A stretch of DNA of 64,000 nucleotides, from the NCBI GenBank assembly GCA_019828565.1, contig JAHDYR010000016.1:1-64000 (forward strand), given 5' to 3'. Shown here one piece after another: positions 53,039-56,999 of the stretch. The translations under genes were made by a program, and so were the position numbers. The DNA is from Carpediemonas membranifera BICM (taxonomy: Eukaryota; Protista; Fornicata). The notes below the pieces were generated by a model that made no database searches, was not told where the DNA came from, and saw nothing but the letters and a program-made list of their open reading frames with translations. Numbering within the stretch: the stretch's first letter is position 1; each line of letters starts with the position of its first letter.

Positions 53039-53222
53039 TTGAGCTGTGTACAATACCCCAATTTCGTGACCGAGTCGTCGGACACACTGTAAACTACACC
53101 TGGTGACGGGGCAAATGGCCGGCCTGCGTTGCTGAACAGCGATCTTGCGCTGCTACGTGTCGTCGCAGTGGGCATGTCAAGCAGGGGCCGCGGGTTTAAG
53201 TCAACCGAGTCACGGCGCCGCG

Positions 53223-56200
53223 ATGTCCTCCCTGAGCGATTCGAGCACTGAGCTCACGCAAAGCGAGTCGGTAACAAGCGATGATGGGTTCAGTGATGAG
53301 GATTTCAAGCCAGAATCGCCAAAGAGGCTCGAGCCCGTCCGCAATGCTTCGCCGATGTATTCCTTCCTTGCTGACGACGATGGCAACGCCTCGAGCGACA
53401 ACGATGTAGATATCGGCCGTGCTGTGAACTTCAGTGGTTTTGAAACCGTTACCGACGTGGTAACACCGCCAAACGTCTCCCGCCTGCTATCGATAGACTC
53501 GATGCGCCAGGACAGGACGACCGGGTCGGCATTATCCCGCCTGGAGATGCTCATGCACACCCCCGGGGCAAGGAAAGGGACGCCAGTTGCCCTGAGGAAA
53601 AGACCGCCCGCCATTGGGAGCGTGTCGACTCCAATGTCACCTCTGTACGCTGGCCGAGGTCTCCCGTCTATACTTGGGGCACATCAGCCGGCTATGGCCC
53701 GAACCAAGTCCACAGGTAACTTCCAAGCAACCACCCGCCGCACCCGTCGCAGGAAAGCGAACGACTCCGACTTCATTGCTTCAGACGACAGCCTGGACAG
53801 CTTCGTAGTGTCGGGTGATGAGACTGTAGACGTCGAGGAGGTCGCCTCTGTGACAGAGGAGGACGTACTGCCCACCCCGCCCCCGTCCCCACCGCCACGC
53901 CGAGCACGACAGCGCCGTATGGTGCTCAACGACTCCGAGACAGAGTCGGATAGAGTCTTCACTCGTACGCAATCGATGGTCCAGAGCACGGTGTTCTTGG
54001 AGTCGGACAACGAGGTGCAGCAGGTCTCCGGGATTGAGGAGACAGACGCATCGGTGTACTCGCTGACAGAGGAGGAGAGTGAAGAGGAGCGCCCAGTGAT
54101 ACGGACGACACTCAAGGAGATCCGTGAGTTCGTCAAATCTGGAGCAATTGGGGAGGATATTGCGAAGCTGATCGTTGCCAGTGCGAAGATGACACTCAAA
54201 CTGCAAGCCAGCGCCAAGGATGTCGACACAAGTGAGATCGCAGAGCAGATCCGGGATATCATGCCGCGACCGCTCTATGGCTATCAGATTGCGGGTGTCC
54301 TATGGCTTCGACTCCTGCGTGCCCACGGGTTGGGCTGCATCCTCGCCGATGACATGGGGCTCGGCAAGTGTCTCGGCAAGGACACACCCGTGCTCATGGC
54401 CGACGGCGAGTTCAAGCCCGTGCAGGATGTTGTCGTCGGGGACATACTGATGGGCGACGACGGCACCCCCAGGACCGTGGGCAGTGTCACCACCGGCCGA
54501 CAGGAGATGGCGCGGGTCAGCCTCCAGGGTGGGGCAAAGTTCACGTGCAACATGGCCCATATCCTCACGGTAGCCCTGCCCGAGCCCCAACGCCTGGTCG
54601 AGGGCAAGGGCTGGGCTGCCGCGGCGTACAGACTCAGCCTGGGTCTGGACGGCGGGGCCACTGCCATCCAGCTCGAGTCCCGGCAGTTCGACACCAGGGC
54701 TGTCGCCGAGGGCTGGCTGGCGTCACTGGCCGGCAACCCCCTCTATGTCCCGGCGGACGGCATCTTCGACATCTCCGTCGAATCCTACTTCGCCCTCCCC
54801 GACGCCATCCGTGCCGAGCTCAAGGCCGTCATCGCCCCCGAGCTCTCCTTCCACGGCCGGGCCGACCCCGCCGTCCCCGTCCACCCATACGTCGTCGGGG
54901 CCTGGCTCGGGGCCGCCTGGGACGACGCCATGCCCGAGGACACCCCCGCCGCGGTCCTCGAGGCGATCGAGGAGCTCCTCCCCAACCGCGACCCCGTCGA
55001 GGCCATGCGTCCGTACGGCAAGCGCGTTCCCCCAGCCATCAAGTACGGGCCCGCCGAGGCCCGGCGCCAGTGTCTGGCCGGCCTGGTCGACACCAACGGC
55101 TACCAGTCCGGCTCCAGGGGTCTGGTCGACGACGCCGCCTTCATGGCCCGCTCCTTGGGTCTGGTGGTGACCAAGTCGGGCGAGATCACGGGCGACCTGA
55201 CCCGCCTTCCTCTGCGGGTTGAGTCCAGTCGCCCCCAGCCTGACCACCACCGCCAAGCCTTCACGGTCGAGCGGCTGCCGGTGGACGACTACTACGGCTT
55301 CACCATCGACGGCAACAGACGTTTCATCATCAACCACGAGATGGTCGTCACCCACAACACCATCCAGGTCCTTGCCCATCTCGCCCTGCTCGCTAGAGAC
55401 GGCGACGTCGGCGTTGACAAGCCTGTCCTCGTCGTAGCGCCCAACAGCACGCTCCGTAACTGGTGTCGCGAAGTTGAGGCCTGGACGAGCTTCAACTGGA
55501 TGCTGCTCCACGGCAAGCCCGACGACAAGACCATCCTGCTGCGGTGGTGGGGCGTCGAAGCCGGGAGGAGCGAGAGCGGTAGGAACAAGACGAAGTACCG
55601 CAATCTGGCGGCCGGTACGGGTCAGGTCATGGATACGACTCGACCGCCGACTGTAGTTGTCACATCGTACGAGCAGCTTACCCGCTCCAAGGGCGTCCGG
55701 CGGGACCTCCAGGACGTACCATGGTCATATCTGGTCGCTGACGAGGCGCAGGCCATCAAGTCGAGCTCGAGTCAGCGATACGCGGCACTGTCCTCGATCC
55801 AGGCCGACCATCGCGTGCTTCTTACTGGGACGCCGATGCAGAACAACTTCGCCGAGTTGCTCTCGCTTCTTGTGTTCATTAACCCCTCGTCACACAAGCC
55901 GCGGCAGGCCCCCAGCCGATCAGACCCTGATGTGGCGAGACTGCTCAGAGTGGTGCTCGCCCCGGTCATGCTCAGACGCCGGAAAACTGAGGTTGTCCGG
56001 CAACTGCCGGAAAAGACTGAGCGGCGAGTGACTGTAGCAATGGGGCGACATCAGAGGCGAGTTTACCAGGAGACGCTCGAGGCGTGCCGGACCAAGCTCA
56101 CTGAGGCTGGCTACAACGGGGCAGGGCCTCTGTCAGTGAAGGCCCGCAGCGTCGTCAGCAACGGCATTATGCTGCTGCGGAAGGCGGCGTGCCACCCAAA

Positions 56201-56999
56201 CCTGGTCGACCCAACCCCCACCGATGAGGACCGACGGACATTGGCCAAGGCCATCATGCTGCACAAGCACGTCCGGGAGCTGGCGGCCAAGGTGCTCAGC
56301 ATGCCGGTGCTGTTGAAGACGCATGTGGCGTCGAATGACGCCATTGAGGAGCTCGCTGAAATCCTGGACCCCCGCGCCTACAAGTCAGGCAACGGGATGT
56401 CAGTGAGGCCGCTTGATTGGACACTAGAGGGCTTATACGCCGCCGCGGGCATCGACATGCACTGGAACCGGCCGGCTGGGGCTAAGGTCGAGCGTGCAGT
56501 GGAGCTGTGCCAGACACACCTCGCGGCAGGAGAGAAGGTTCTGATTTTTAGCCAGTTCCGGATGGTCTTGGACCTCCTCGAGATCAGACTGACTGCTGCG
56601 CACATCCGGTTCATGCGAATTGACGGGCAGACAGACACCGAGGATCGCCAGCCCCTGCTCGACCAGTTCACAGCCGGCCCGCCCGCCGTGATGCTGCTGT
56701 CGACCCGAGCAGGCGGTGTGGGCATCAATGTGACAGCGGCGAACATCGCCATCTTCCACGACCACGACTACAACCCCACCAGTGACCAGCAGGCAGAGGC
56801 GAGGGTGCACCGGATCGGGCAGACAAAGCCGGTGACGGTGTACAAGCTGGTGGCGGGGGACACGATCGATGAGGCCATTCTGAGGATAGCGGCGGGTAAG
56901 GACAGGGTGAACGAGGCGTTGCTCGGGGACGGGGAGGCAGTCGATGACGATGATAACATTCAGCTGGCAGCGTGCTTCTTCAGCAACAAGAGCGGATAA
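53223..56999 (+). CDS. SNF2-family chromatin-remodelling ATPase (SMARCAD1/Fun30-like) containing an intein
   Basis: L..YQ..GV.WL, ILADDMGLGK[intein]TIQ, VVAP.S...NW..E, DEAQ.IK, LLTGTP.QN, LRR.K, KVLIFSQF, RIDG, LLSTRAGGVGIN, NP..D.QA.ARVHRIGQ. Confidence 0.95.
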   Translation: MSSLSDSSTELTQSESVTSDDGFSDEDFKPESPKRLEPVRNASPMYSFLADDDGNASSDNDVDIGRAVNFSGFETVTDVVTPPNVSRLLSIDSMRQDRTTGSALSRLEMLMHTPGARKGTPVALRKRPPAIGSVSTPMSPLYAGRGLPSILGAHQPAMARTKSTGNFQATTRRTRRRKANDSDFIASDDSLDSFVVSGDETVDVEEVASVTEEDVLPTPPPSPPPRRARQRRMVLNDSETESDRVFTRTQSMVQSTVFLESDNEVQQVSGIEETDASVYSLTEEESEEERPVIRTTLKEIREFVKSGAIGEDIAKLIVASAKMTLKLQASAKDVDTSEIAEQIRDIMPRPLYGYQIAGVLWLRLLRAHGLGCILADDMGLGKCLGKDTPVLMADGEFKPVQDVVVGDILMGDDGTPRTVGSVTTGRQEMARVSLQGGAKFTCNMAHILTVALPEPQRLVEGKGWAAAAYRLSLGLDGGATAIQLESRQFDTRAVAEGWLASLAGNPLYVPADGIFDISVESYFALPDAIRAELKAVIAPELSFHGRADPAVPVHPYVVGAWLGAAWDDAMPEDTPAAVLEAIEELLPNRDPVEAMRPYGKRVPPAIKYGPAEARRQCLAGLVDTNGYQSGSRGLVDDAAFMARSLGLVVTKSGEITGDLTRLPLRVESSRPQPDHHRQAFTVERLPVDDYYGFTIDGNRRFIINHEMVVTHNTIQVLAHLALLARDGDVGVDKPVLVVAPNSTLRNWCREVEAWTSFNWMLLHGKPDDKTILLRWWGVEAGRSESGRNKTKYRNLAAGTGQVMDTTRPPTVVVTSYEQLTRSKGVRRDLQDVPWSYLVADEAQAIKSSSSQRYAALSSIQADHRVLLTGTPMQNNFAELLSLLVFINPSSHKPRQAPSRSDPDVARLLRVVLAPVMLRRRKTEVVRQLPEKTERRVTVAMGRHQRRVYQETLEACRTKLTEAGYNGAGPLSVKARSVVSNGIMLLRKAACHPNLVDPTPTDEDRRTLAKAIMLHKHVRELAAKVLSMPVLLKTHVASNDAIEELAEILDPRAYKSGNGMSVRPLDWTLEGLYAAAGIDMHWNRPAGAKVERAVELCQTHLAAGEKVLIFSQFRMVLDLLEIRLTAAHIRFMRIDGQTDTEDRQPLLDQFTAGPPAVMLLSTRAGGVGINVTAANIAIFHDHDYNPTSDQQAEARVHRIGQTKPVTVYKLVAGDTIDEAILRIAAGKDRVNEALLGDGEAVDDDDNIQLAACFFSNKSG
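54369..55358 (+). mobile_element. Intein (330 aa, VMA1-type Hint) with degenerate LAGLIDADG endonuclease
   Basis: Block A CLGKDTPVLMADG; block B FTCNMAHIL; block F/G DDYYGFTIDGNRRFII..MVVTHN/T; decayed LAGLIDADG motifs PYVVGAWLGAA and CLAGLVDTNG. Removing it restores Walker A GLGKT. Confidence 0.96.

Follow-up and report, generated by a model that had tools for sequence, protein, structure and literature searches.

The analyzed window, the first 64,000 nucleotides (nt) of contig JAHDYR010000016.1 of Carpediemonas membranifera BICM (GCA_019828565.1), contains a gene coding for an SNF2-family ATPase whose ATP-binding loop is split by an intein. The open reading frame (ORF; 53145-56999, forward strand) has its first ATG at 53223 and codes for 1258 amino acids (aa). 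The ORF, its translation, and Pfam matches delimited a host gene at 53223-56999 with 1258 codons plus stop and no apparent intron. Three segments on the forward strand make up this gene. The N-extein (53223-54368, 382 aa by translation) ends in the first half of the Walker A motif (DDMGLGK). It is followed by the intein (54369-55358, 330 aa), which runs from Cys1 to His329-Asn330 and was placed in the PI-SceI/Hom_end_hint class by its motifs, Pfam and PDB matches, and structural model. The C-extein (55359-56999, 546 aa plus stop), identified by translation, Pfam, and a PDB match, begins with Thr+1, which is the T of GKT. The insert is a class-1 intein of the VMA1/PI-SceI type, and the nuclear SNF2 gene carries it within its Walker A loop.

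The insert comprises 990 bp or 330 codons, in frame and free of stops, with TGT (Cys1) starting at 54369, AAC (Asn330) ending at 55358, and ACC (Thr+1) at 55359. The N-terminal junction reads GCILADDMGLGK/CLGKDTPVLMADG and the C-terminal junction NHEMVVTHN/TIQVLAHLALL (in short, ILADDMGLGK/CLGKDTPV...EMVVTHN/TIQVLAHL, where slashes mark the intein boundaries), giving GLGK/T of SNF2 motif I as the insertion site. Reading of the ORF thus bore out a preliminary description of this DNA, which had placed an in-frame insertion of this size between K and T of DDMGLGK/T. Pfam assigned Hom_end_hint (PF05203) to the intein with 78.1 bits against a cut-off of 32.1, and NCBIfam gave merely a marginal match at the intein N-terminus. 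The closest solved proteins among PDB sequences were PI-SceI (E value 7e-11) and the Prp8 inteins. An AlphaFold2 model of the intein built on a 60-sequence family alignment had a mean predicted local distance difference test (pLDDT) of 93.9 and a predicted template modeling score (pTM) of 0.90. Foldseek searches with this model returned PI-SceI as the best match (E value 2e-20, template modeling score 0.73-0.75), and the Prp8 and gp41-1 inteins also matched, in agreement with a Hint fold. The likeness to the yeast VMA1 intein proposed earlier was found in both sequence and predicted fold.

The residues expected of a class-1 intein were all present, as the preliminary description had listed for Cys1, the block B His (H64), the terminal His-Asn, and Thr+1, and the columns of Cys1, Asn61, His64, G310, His329, and Asn330 were invariant in the 60-member family alignment. 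Block B reads FTCNMAHIL (N61, H64) and is of the (T/N)xxH type. This is the same form as block B of PI-SceI, FTCNATHEL, the PI-SceI alignments obtained here ending at residue 51, before that block. The C-terminal splicing blocks F and G (55284-55358, forward strand; DDYYGFTIDG...VVTHN) aligned to the PI-SceI C-terminus and hold the invariant G310, H329, and N330. The +1 residue among 250 intein relatives excised from database matches was T in 210, S in 27, and C in 13. A spliceosomal intron was considered as the nature of the insert and rejected, since the ends are TGT...AAC and not GT-AG and the coding frame is conserved, with a ratio of nonsynonymous to synonymous divergence (omega) of 0.05. 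Preservation of the motifs and of the host gene, purifying selection, and the Hint fold of the confident model agree with the earlier judgment that the intein looks splicing-competent, and the element is a real and probably active intein.

The SNF2 motifs of the extein were all intact in the translation, including DEAQ, TGTPMQN, and QAEARVHRIGQ in the C-extein, and the gene would therefore be useless unless the insert were taken out at the protein level. Pfam matches on the host were SNF2-rel_dom (5.8e-54), with the profile split into two stretches, and Helicase_C (7.5e-20) downstream. The extein searches used the C-extein by itself. Against PDB sequences the best match was Fft3 of the Fun30/SMARCAD1 type (1.5e-61) with INO80 a close second (1.4e-58), and the best named full-length relatives were plant CHR19 and SMARCAD1 at 31-34% identity, suggesting a Fun30/SMARCAD1-like SNF2 ATPase as host. 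The Hint domain was absent from all 119 of the other C-extein relatives among the matches listed. After splicing, the mature remodeler would comprise 928 aa and its Walker A loop would be normal, which is of relevance for the annotation of this gene.

An intein-free SNF2 paralogue was identified on contig 2 at C2:356217-357677, and in the region C2:355500-359500 (minus strand) it has a 646-aa open frame with 43% identity to the C-extein. Its Walker A reads ADEMGLGKTVQ, and the site that corresponds to the insertion point is empty (GCC GAT GAA ATG GGC CTC GGC AAG/ACT GTC CAA, compared with GCC GAT GAC ATG GGG CTC GGC AAG/ACC ATC CAG in the SNF2 host gene). Upstream of the insertion point, 21 of 24 bases are the same in the two genes.

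A six-frame search of the 24.2-Mb assembly (69 contigs, the SNF2 locus lying on contig 17, C17) with the intein as query yielded four matches with 93-100% identity, the SNF2 copy included, and the other copies had 91-97% aa identity to the SNF2 copy. Database proteins annotated as Carpediemonas membranifera also hold copies that are 97% and 92% identical. Besides the SNF2 copy (C17, 54369-55358; DDMGLGK/C...HN/T), the element was found in an SRP54-type GTPase (C39:711573-712568; GVNGVGK/C...HN/S), a DEAD-box helicase (C14:61821-62816; AKTGSGK/C...HN/T), and a paralogous DEAD-box helicase (C4:170096-171091; AKTGSGK/C...HN/T). All four copies of this family, termed family A, lie directly after the GK of the Walker A loop (GxGK/T or S), i.e., at the same codon boundary in unrelated genes. 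The DNA likeness among the copies opens at the common GGCAAG (Gly-Lys) codons and closes at the last intein codon, and the flanks are unrelated save between the two DEAD-box paralogues. Two codons (Ala-Glu, 6 bp) near 54600, between codons 79 and 80, are missing from the SNF2 copy only, which reads RLVEG compared with RLAEVEG in the other three and therefore is not the source of these in its present form. Other than this two-codon deletion, nothing in the sequence was found to be peculiar to the SNF2 copy, which differs from the SRP54 copy by the 6-bp deletion and about 28 substitutions. Judged from these sequences, the SNF2 copy is one that came from within the Carpediemonas genome.

Comparison of the four copies revealed a mosaic with a sharp internal boundary. 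The 5' segment of the SNF2 intein (nt 1-192, 54369-54560, forward strand), including blocks A and B with N61 and H64, is close only to the copy in the SRP54 gene, its split from the DEAD-box copies being ancient, whereas the 3' segment (nt 193-990, 54561-55358, forward strand) is near-identical in all four and is a candidate recent ectopic gene-conversion tract. Between the SNF2/SRP54 pair and the DEAD-box pair there were 50 fixed differences in nt 3-192 and a single one (nt 958) in the ~800 nt of nt 193-990, a contrast that is not due to chance (Fisher p = 2e-27). In codons 1-66, synonymous divergence (dS) between the two pairs was saturated (>3) with nonsynonymous divergence (dN) of 0.14-0.16 and omega about 0.05, denoting purifying selection on the N-terminal splicing region, while codons 67-332 had dS of 0.05-0.08 and omega of 0.2-0.46 in all pairs. 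The two 5' types share 72.6% DNA identity and each is hardly less close to other intein families of the genome (67-75%). The SNF2 and SRP54 copies are alike over their full length, with dS of 0.04-0.08. The number and distribution of fixed differences, along with the dS contrast, point to recent ectopic gene conversion. Extein dS between the two DEAD-box paralogues is 0.063, equal to that of the common 3' part, and so the last homogenization of all four copies would be about as old as the DEAD-box gene duplication.

The base composition of the insert follows the same division. Its G+C content reaches 0.74 compared with about 0.60 in the flanks, and G+C content at third codon positions (GC3) was 0.89 for the whole intein, 0.90-0.92 for the common 3' part, 0.70-0.76 for the SNF2 exteins, and 0.68-0.74 for the unshared 5' part of the DEAD-box copies. 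The high GC3 of the common part accounts for the G+C bump of the insert. The raised GC3 in this tract fits with GC-biased gene conversion, of which it may be a footprint.

The endonuclease domain between the splicing halves is degenerate. Both LAGLIDADG motifs are still recognizable at residues 175-183 (VVGAWLGAA) and 236-244 (LAGLVDTNG). Motif 1 (VVGAWLGAAWDD; 54891-54926, forward strand) has Ala182 at the catalytic position (54912-54914) and corresponds to helix 173-181 of the model. Motif 2 (LAGLVDTNGY; 55074-55103, forward strand), which aligns to LAGLIDSDGY of PI-SceI, has Asn243 at the catalytic position (55095-55097) and corresponds to helix 229-241. Endonuclease columns were read from the alignment of the 250 intein relatives, in which the A182 column is Asp in 180 and the N243 column in 182 (72-73%), and 170 of 253 inteins have an acidic residue at both positions. 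The loss of both catalytic Asp residues noted in the preliminary description (WLGAA and VDTNG) was thus evident against the family, and the catalytic acidic residues are replaced at both positions in all four near-identical copies. Blocks C and E are separated by 61 aa (median 93) and blocks E and F by 62 aa (median 90), such that ~60 residues, about a third of the endonuclease core, are gone. Residues 156-294 of the model consist of helices with just two very short strand stretches, and hence there is no beta saddle. The Pfam Hom_end match to the intein had an E value of 0.33, under the cut-off. The Hint-internal insertion, which is in the place of the PI-SceI DNA-recognition region, is by contrast unusually long, at 95 aa against a median of 46. 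The remnant domain keeps the nearly invariant family residues R232, A237, G238, D241, and R261-G264 of the 60-member alignment. The near-identical C2 paralogue site, empty and without invasion, was likewise counted for a dead endonuclease. The LAGLIDADG endonuclease is vestigial and looks dead, and the earlier expectation that homing is probably dead gained further backing from the missing core residues and the uninvaded site. An active endonuclease supplied in trans by the other inteins of the genome was considered as a candidate and rejected, since every other Carpediemonas intein in the alignments lacks at least one of the two acidic residues.

The SNF2 intein belongs to a very large clade of P-loop inteins (GK/T or S) that spans unrelated nucleoside triphosphatases. 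The position after the Gly-Lys of a P-loop is shared by 220 of the 250 relatives, whose hosts include AAA+ ATPases, kinesins, myosins, superfamily 1 and 2 (SF1/SF2) helicases, SNF2, SMC, DnaB, and terminase-like proteins. Relatives at the D-x-x-G-L-G-K site used by the SNF2 intein also occur in several metagenomic SNF2-domain proteins (labels P0010, P0146, P0017, and P0174), for example INADDVGLGK/C and LNADSVGLGK/C. After the copies of its own genome, the closest inteins are in eukaryote-type hosts (Dysnectes, myosins, and kinesins) with 36-45% identity. FastTree analysis of 253 inteins placed family A in a clade (support 0.91) with two Dysnectes brevis inteins, the other Carpediemonas inteins, and inteins of uncultured eukaryotes whose hosts are myosin and kinesin genes. 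At least 568 relatives were found in IMG/VR, many in giant-virus bins, with identities of just 24-30%. Acquisition from a virus or bacterium had been suggested from the sequence, and a recent donor of this kind was rejected: the viral relatives are at most 30% identical, and eukaryote-hosted inteins are closer, the nearest of all being the three other copies in the same genome. Viruses may well figure in the deep history of the P-loop intein clade.

The likely explanation for the locus is that a selfish class-1 PI-SceI-type intein occupies the Walker A loop of a Fun30/SMARCAD1-like remodeler and is kept alike among its sites by host recombination, and that it is not a switch specific to the remodeler. 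Translation would give a 1258-aa precursor with a split ATP-binding loop, from which the intein would excise itself via Cys1, Asn61 and His64 of block B, and His329-Asn330, with the Thr of the loop itself serving as the +1 nucleophile. Excision would restore GLGK-TIQ and thereby a working remodeler, and splicing is probably constitutive instead of acting as a switch. Host homologous recombination would operate through ectopic gene conversion among the inteins of different genes. The most recent exchange putatively covered nt ~193-990 across all four copies and, for the SNF2/SRP54 pair, the full length of the element. As the endonuclease looks dead, such gene conversion via host recombination is what most likely keeps the copies alike.

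Several points weigh against this explanation. Gene conversion is what we infer from the pattern of the copies alone, and similar copies could result from a burst of true homing, whether through an endonuclease that later decayed or through one supplied in trans (e.g., viral). High GC3 could come from a GC-rich donor instead of conversion. The SNF2 site may have been newly invaded, or it may have held an older intein that was overwritten. Finally, the inner FastTree branches that set family A beside Dysnectes are weak (0.56-0.68). A continuing role of the endonuclease is rather unlikely by comparison, either with the shrunken LAGLIDADG domain itself cutting or nicking or with an active relative acting in trans (an unsampled intein or a giant virus), followed by repair from the resident copies. 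Three non-homologous genes hold copies at exactly the same codon boundary, as site-specific cutting at GGC AAG/AC would give, but the near-identical empty site of the C2 paralogue was not invaded. The remnant retains its family residues with a 3' omega below 1, yet neither catalytic acidic residue persists in any of the four copies, ~60 core residues are gone, and no aligned Carpediemonas intein has both acidic residues. The many relatives in viral contigs, including giant-virus bins, would offer a source of such activity, but their low identity speaks against it.

The proposal in the preliminary description that the intein was co-opted as a redox, metal, or stress switch gating the remodeler in a low-oxygen organism found no support in the sequence and is improbable. 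ATP binding by the ATPase is impossible before splicing, the nucleophile is Cys1, and conditional splicing is known for some bacterial inteins (PMC6195587; PMC7360933). A remodeler-specific role is nevertheless unlikely because the same element, 91-97% identical, is present in an SRP54-type GTPase and DEAD-box helicases; in addition, the clade targets P-loops irrespective of host function and the SNF2 copy has no feature of its own beyond the two-codon deletion. Still less probable is that the insert is removed as RNA, that the gene is a dead pseudogene, or that the locus is an assembly chimera derived from the other copies. Four near-identical repeats could mislead an assembler, but the SNF2 copy has its own differences, namely the 6-bp deletion and the about 28 substitutions relative to the SRP54 copy. 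The frame is open over 1258 codons with the SNF2 motifs all present, and the splicing blocks are under strong purifying selection. The insert also lacks GT...AG ends, and Dysnectes brevis proteins named after transcriptome assemblies have related inteins within the coding sequence. The selfish intein maintained by host recombination is thus the explanation preferred here.

SNF2 as a eukaryotic intein host is already known, contrary to the earlier suggestion of a possibly new host. Anaeramoeba genomes have 45-103 nuclear inteins each, including inteins in a chromodomain SNF2 protein, SWI2, and HARP/SMARCAL1, and the Anaeramoeba "cluster 1" inteins are all in P-loops of non-homologous proteins and move between P-loops (Gallot-Lavallee et al., 2023; PMC10710043). 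With SNF2 hosts and P-loop-moving inteins published for Anaeramoeba, and metagenomic SNF2 relatives at the same site, the claim of novelty fails. The cluster 1 and SNF2/SWI2/SMARCAL1 inteins resemble the Carpediemonas elements in being metamonad nuclear inteins in Walker A loops of non-homologous proteins, with within-genome movement inferred and SNF2-type remodelers among the hosts, a likeness by published description. Carpediemonas is a fornicate with about a dozen inteins compared with the 45-103 of Anaeramoeba, and its four family A copies stand out by 91-97% identity, a sharp recombination breakpoint, and an endonuclease that is vestigial in all. A similar intein transfer in Rhizophagus, between the SRP receptor and IF-2P (PMC10710043, Figure 4 legend), parallels the SNF2/SRP54-type pair, by description only, as an apparent within-genome transfer between unrelated GTPases, and differs in its fungal lineage and intein cluster. 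P-loop sites were also stressed by Novikova et al. (2016; PMC4760082), who reported 15 bacterial HepA/SNF2 inteins. The bacterial, phage, and giant-virus inteins of this kind (DnaB site b, MCM site a, RFC, and HepA/SNF2; PMC4760082) likewise reside in ATPase P-loops but have 24-35% identity to the SNF2 intein, mostly retain both catalytic Asp residues, and are in prokaryotic or viral hosts. A full-text search for Carpediemonas and intein returned no relevant paper, and Carpediemonas is not mentioned in the main text of PMC10710043; the Carpediemonas intein set appears unreported in the literature searched.

Among characterized inteins, PI-SceI (the Saccharomyces VMA1 intein; PDB 1VDE and 1LWS) shares with the SNF2 intein Cys1, the DDYYG of block F, the terminal HN, and presumably the NxxH form of block B. 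Both also have a Hint-domain insertion, placed at the DNA-recognition region of PI-SceI, and a LAGLIDADG domain that separates the two splicing halves. PI-SceI differs in its length (454 aa vs. 330 aa), in having Asp218 and Asp326 where the SNF2 intein has Ala and Asn, and in its host site, which is VMA1 compared with a P-loop GK/T. The endonuclease core of the Carpediemonas intein is also ~60 residues under the family median.

At least seven further inteins were identified in the genome besides the four family A copies, a number well above the four cited as the maximum of nuclear inteins in one eukaryote before Anaeramoeba (PMC10710043). They are in an AAA ATPase (C39:730310-731416; GPPGCGK/C), a Rad51-like protein (C13:786196-787107; GEAGTGK/C), a 4969-aa ORF (C4:191247-192443; GATGSGK/C), SMC6 (C67:385737-386939; GNGAGK/C), a kinesin (C63:823650-824846; GTTGSGK/C), a G-alpha-like P-loop protein (C6:1530846-~1531800; GAGNSGK/C), and at a site that is not a P-loop (C15:279763-280638; PVAR/C). 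The inteins of the 4969-aa ORF, SMC6, and kinesin form a second family of about 400 aa with 79-85% mutual identity in three unrelated hosts, and here too other residues stand at the catalytic LAGLIDADG positions (T or A, and N or S). The kinesin intein has a further copy at about C63:831996-833191 (within C63:830000-834700) with its N- and C-terminal parts in different frames, which denotes a pseudogene copy with a frameshift or an error of assembly. A 638-aa intein was observed in the P-loop of a Ski2/Mtr4-like helicase (C6:862659-864572, minus strand; SAHTSSGK/C...THN/T). Its ends resemble the 292-aa intein of C15 and ~340 extra residues lie just after an HWAC stretch. This intein is possibly a nested element. 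Hint-like N-termini (CFAxGTxVL) without a preceding P-loop were also found at C8:698168-698305, C8:700924-701061, and C13:571020-571904 and may belong to Hedgehog-type Hint domains instead of inteins.

For a long time nuclear inteins were held to occur almost exclusively in VMA1, PRP8, and a small number of polymerase genes, a view that changed with Anaeramoeba in 2023. The present locus shows inteins of this P-loop-hopping kind in a metamonad distantly related to Anaeramoeba. Novelty does not lie in the host gene, and the most informative feature of the locus is the multi-copy mosaic nature of the element, which had not been noticed in the preliminary description. Its value is as clean evidence of recent exchange between intein copies without a working endonuclease. 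With 3' parts that are identical, a 5' part of ancient divergence, and an endonuclease that looks dead, the four copies make the persistence and movement of inteins after endonuclease decay directly testable. We tentatively suggest, as a possibility that goes beyond the SNF2 locus, that Carpediemonas membranifera could rank as a second eukaryote rich in inteins, its nuclear inteins numbering at least a dozen and residing nearly all in P-loops. In this organism, inteins lacking a working endonuclease would still colonize or overwrite sites in non-homologous genes by host homologous recombination only, the SNF2/SRP54 pair being the freshest event. If true, intein mobility would outlive the homing endonuclease, and Carpediemonas would be a natural system in which to measure such mobility.

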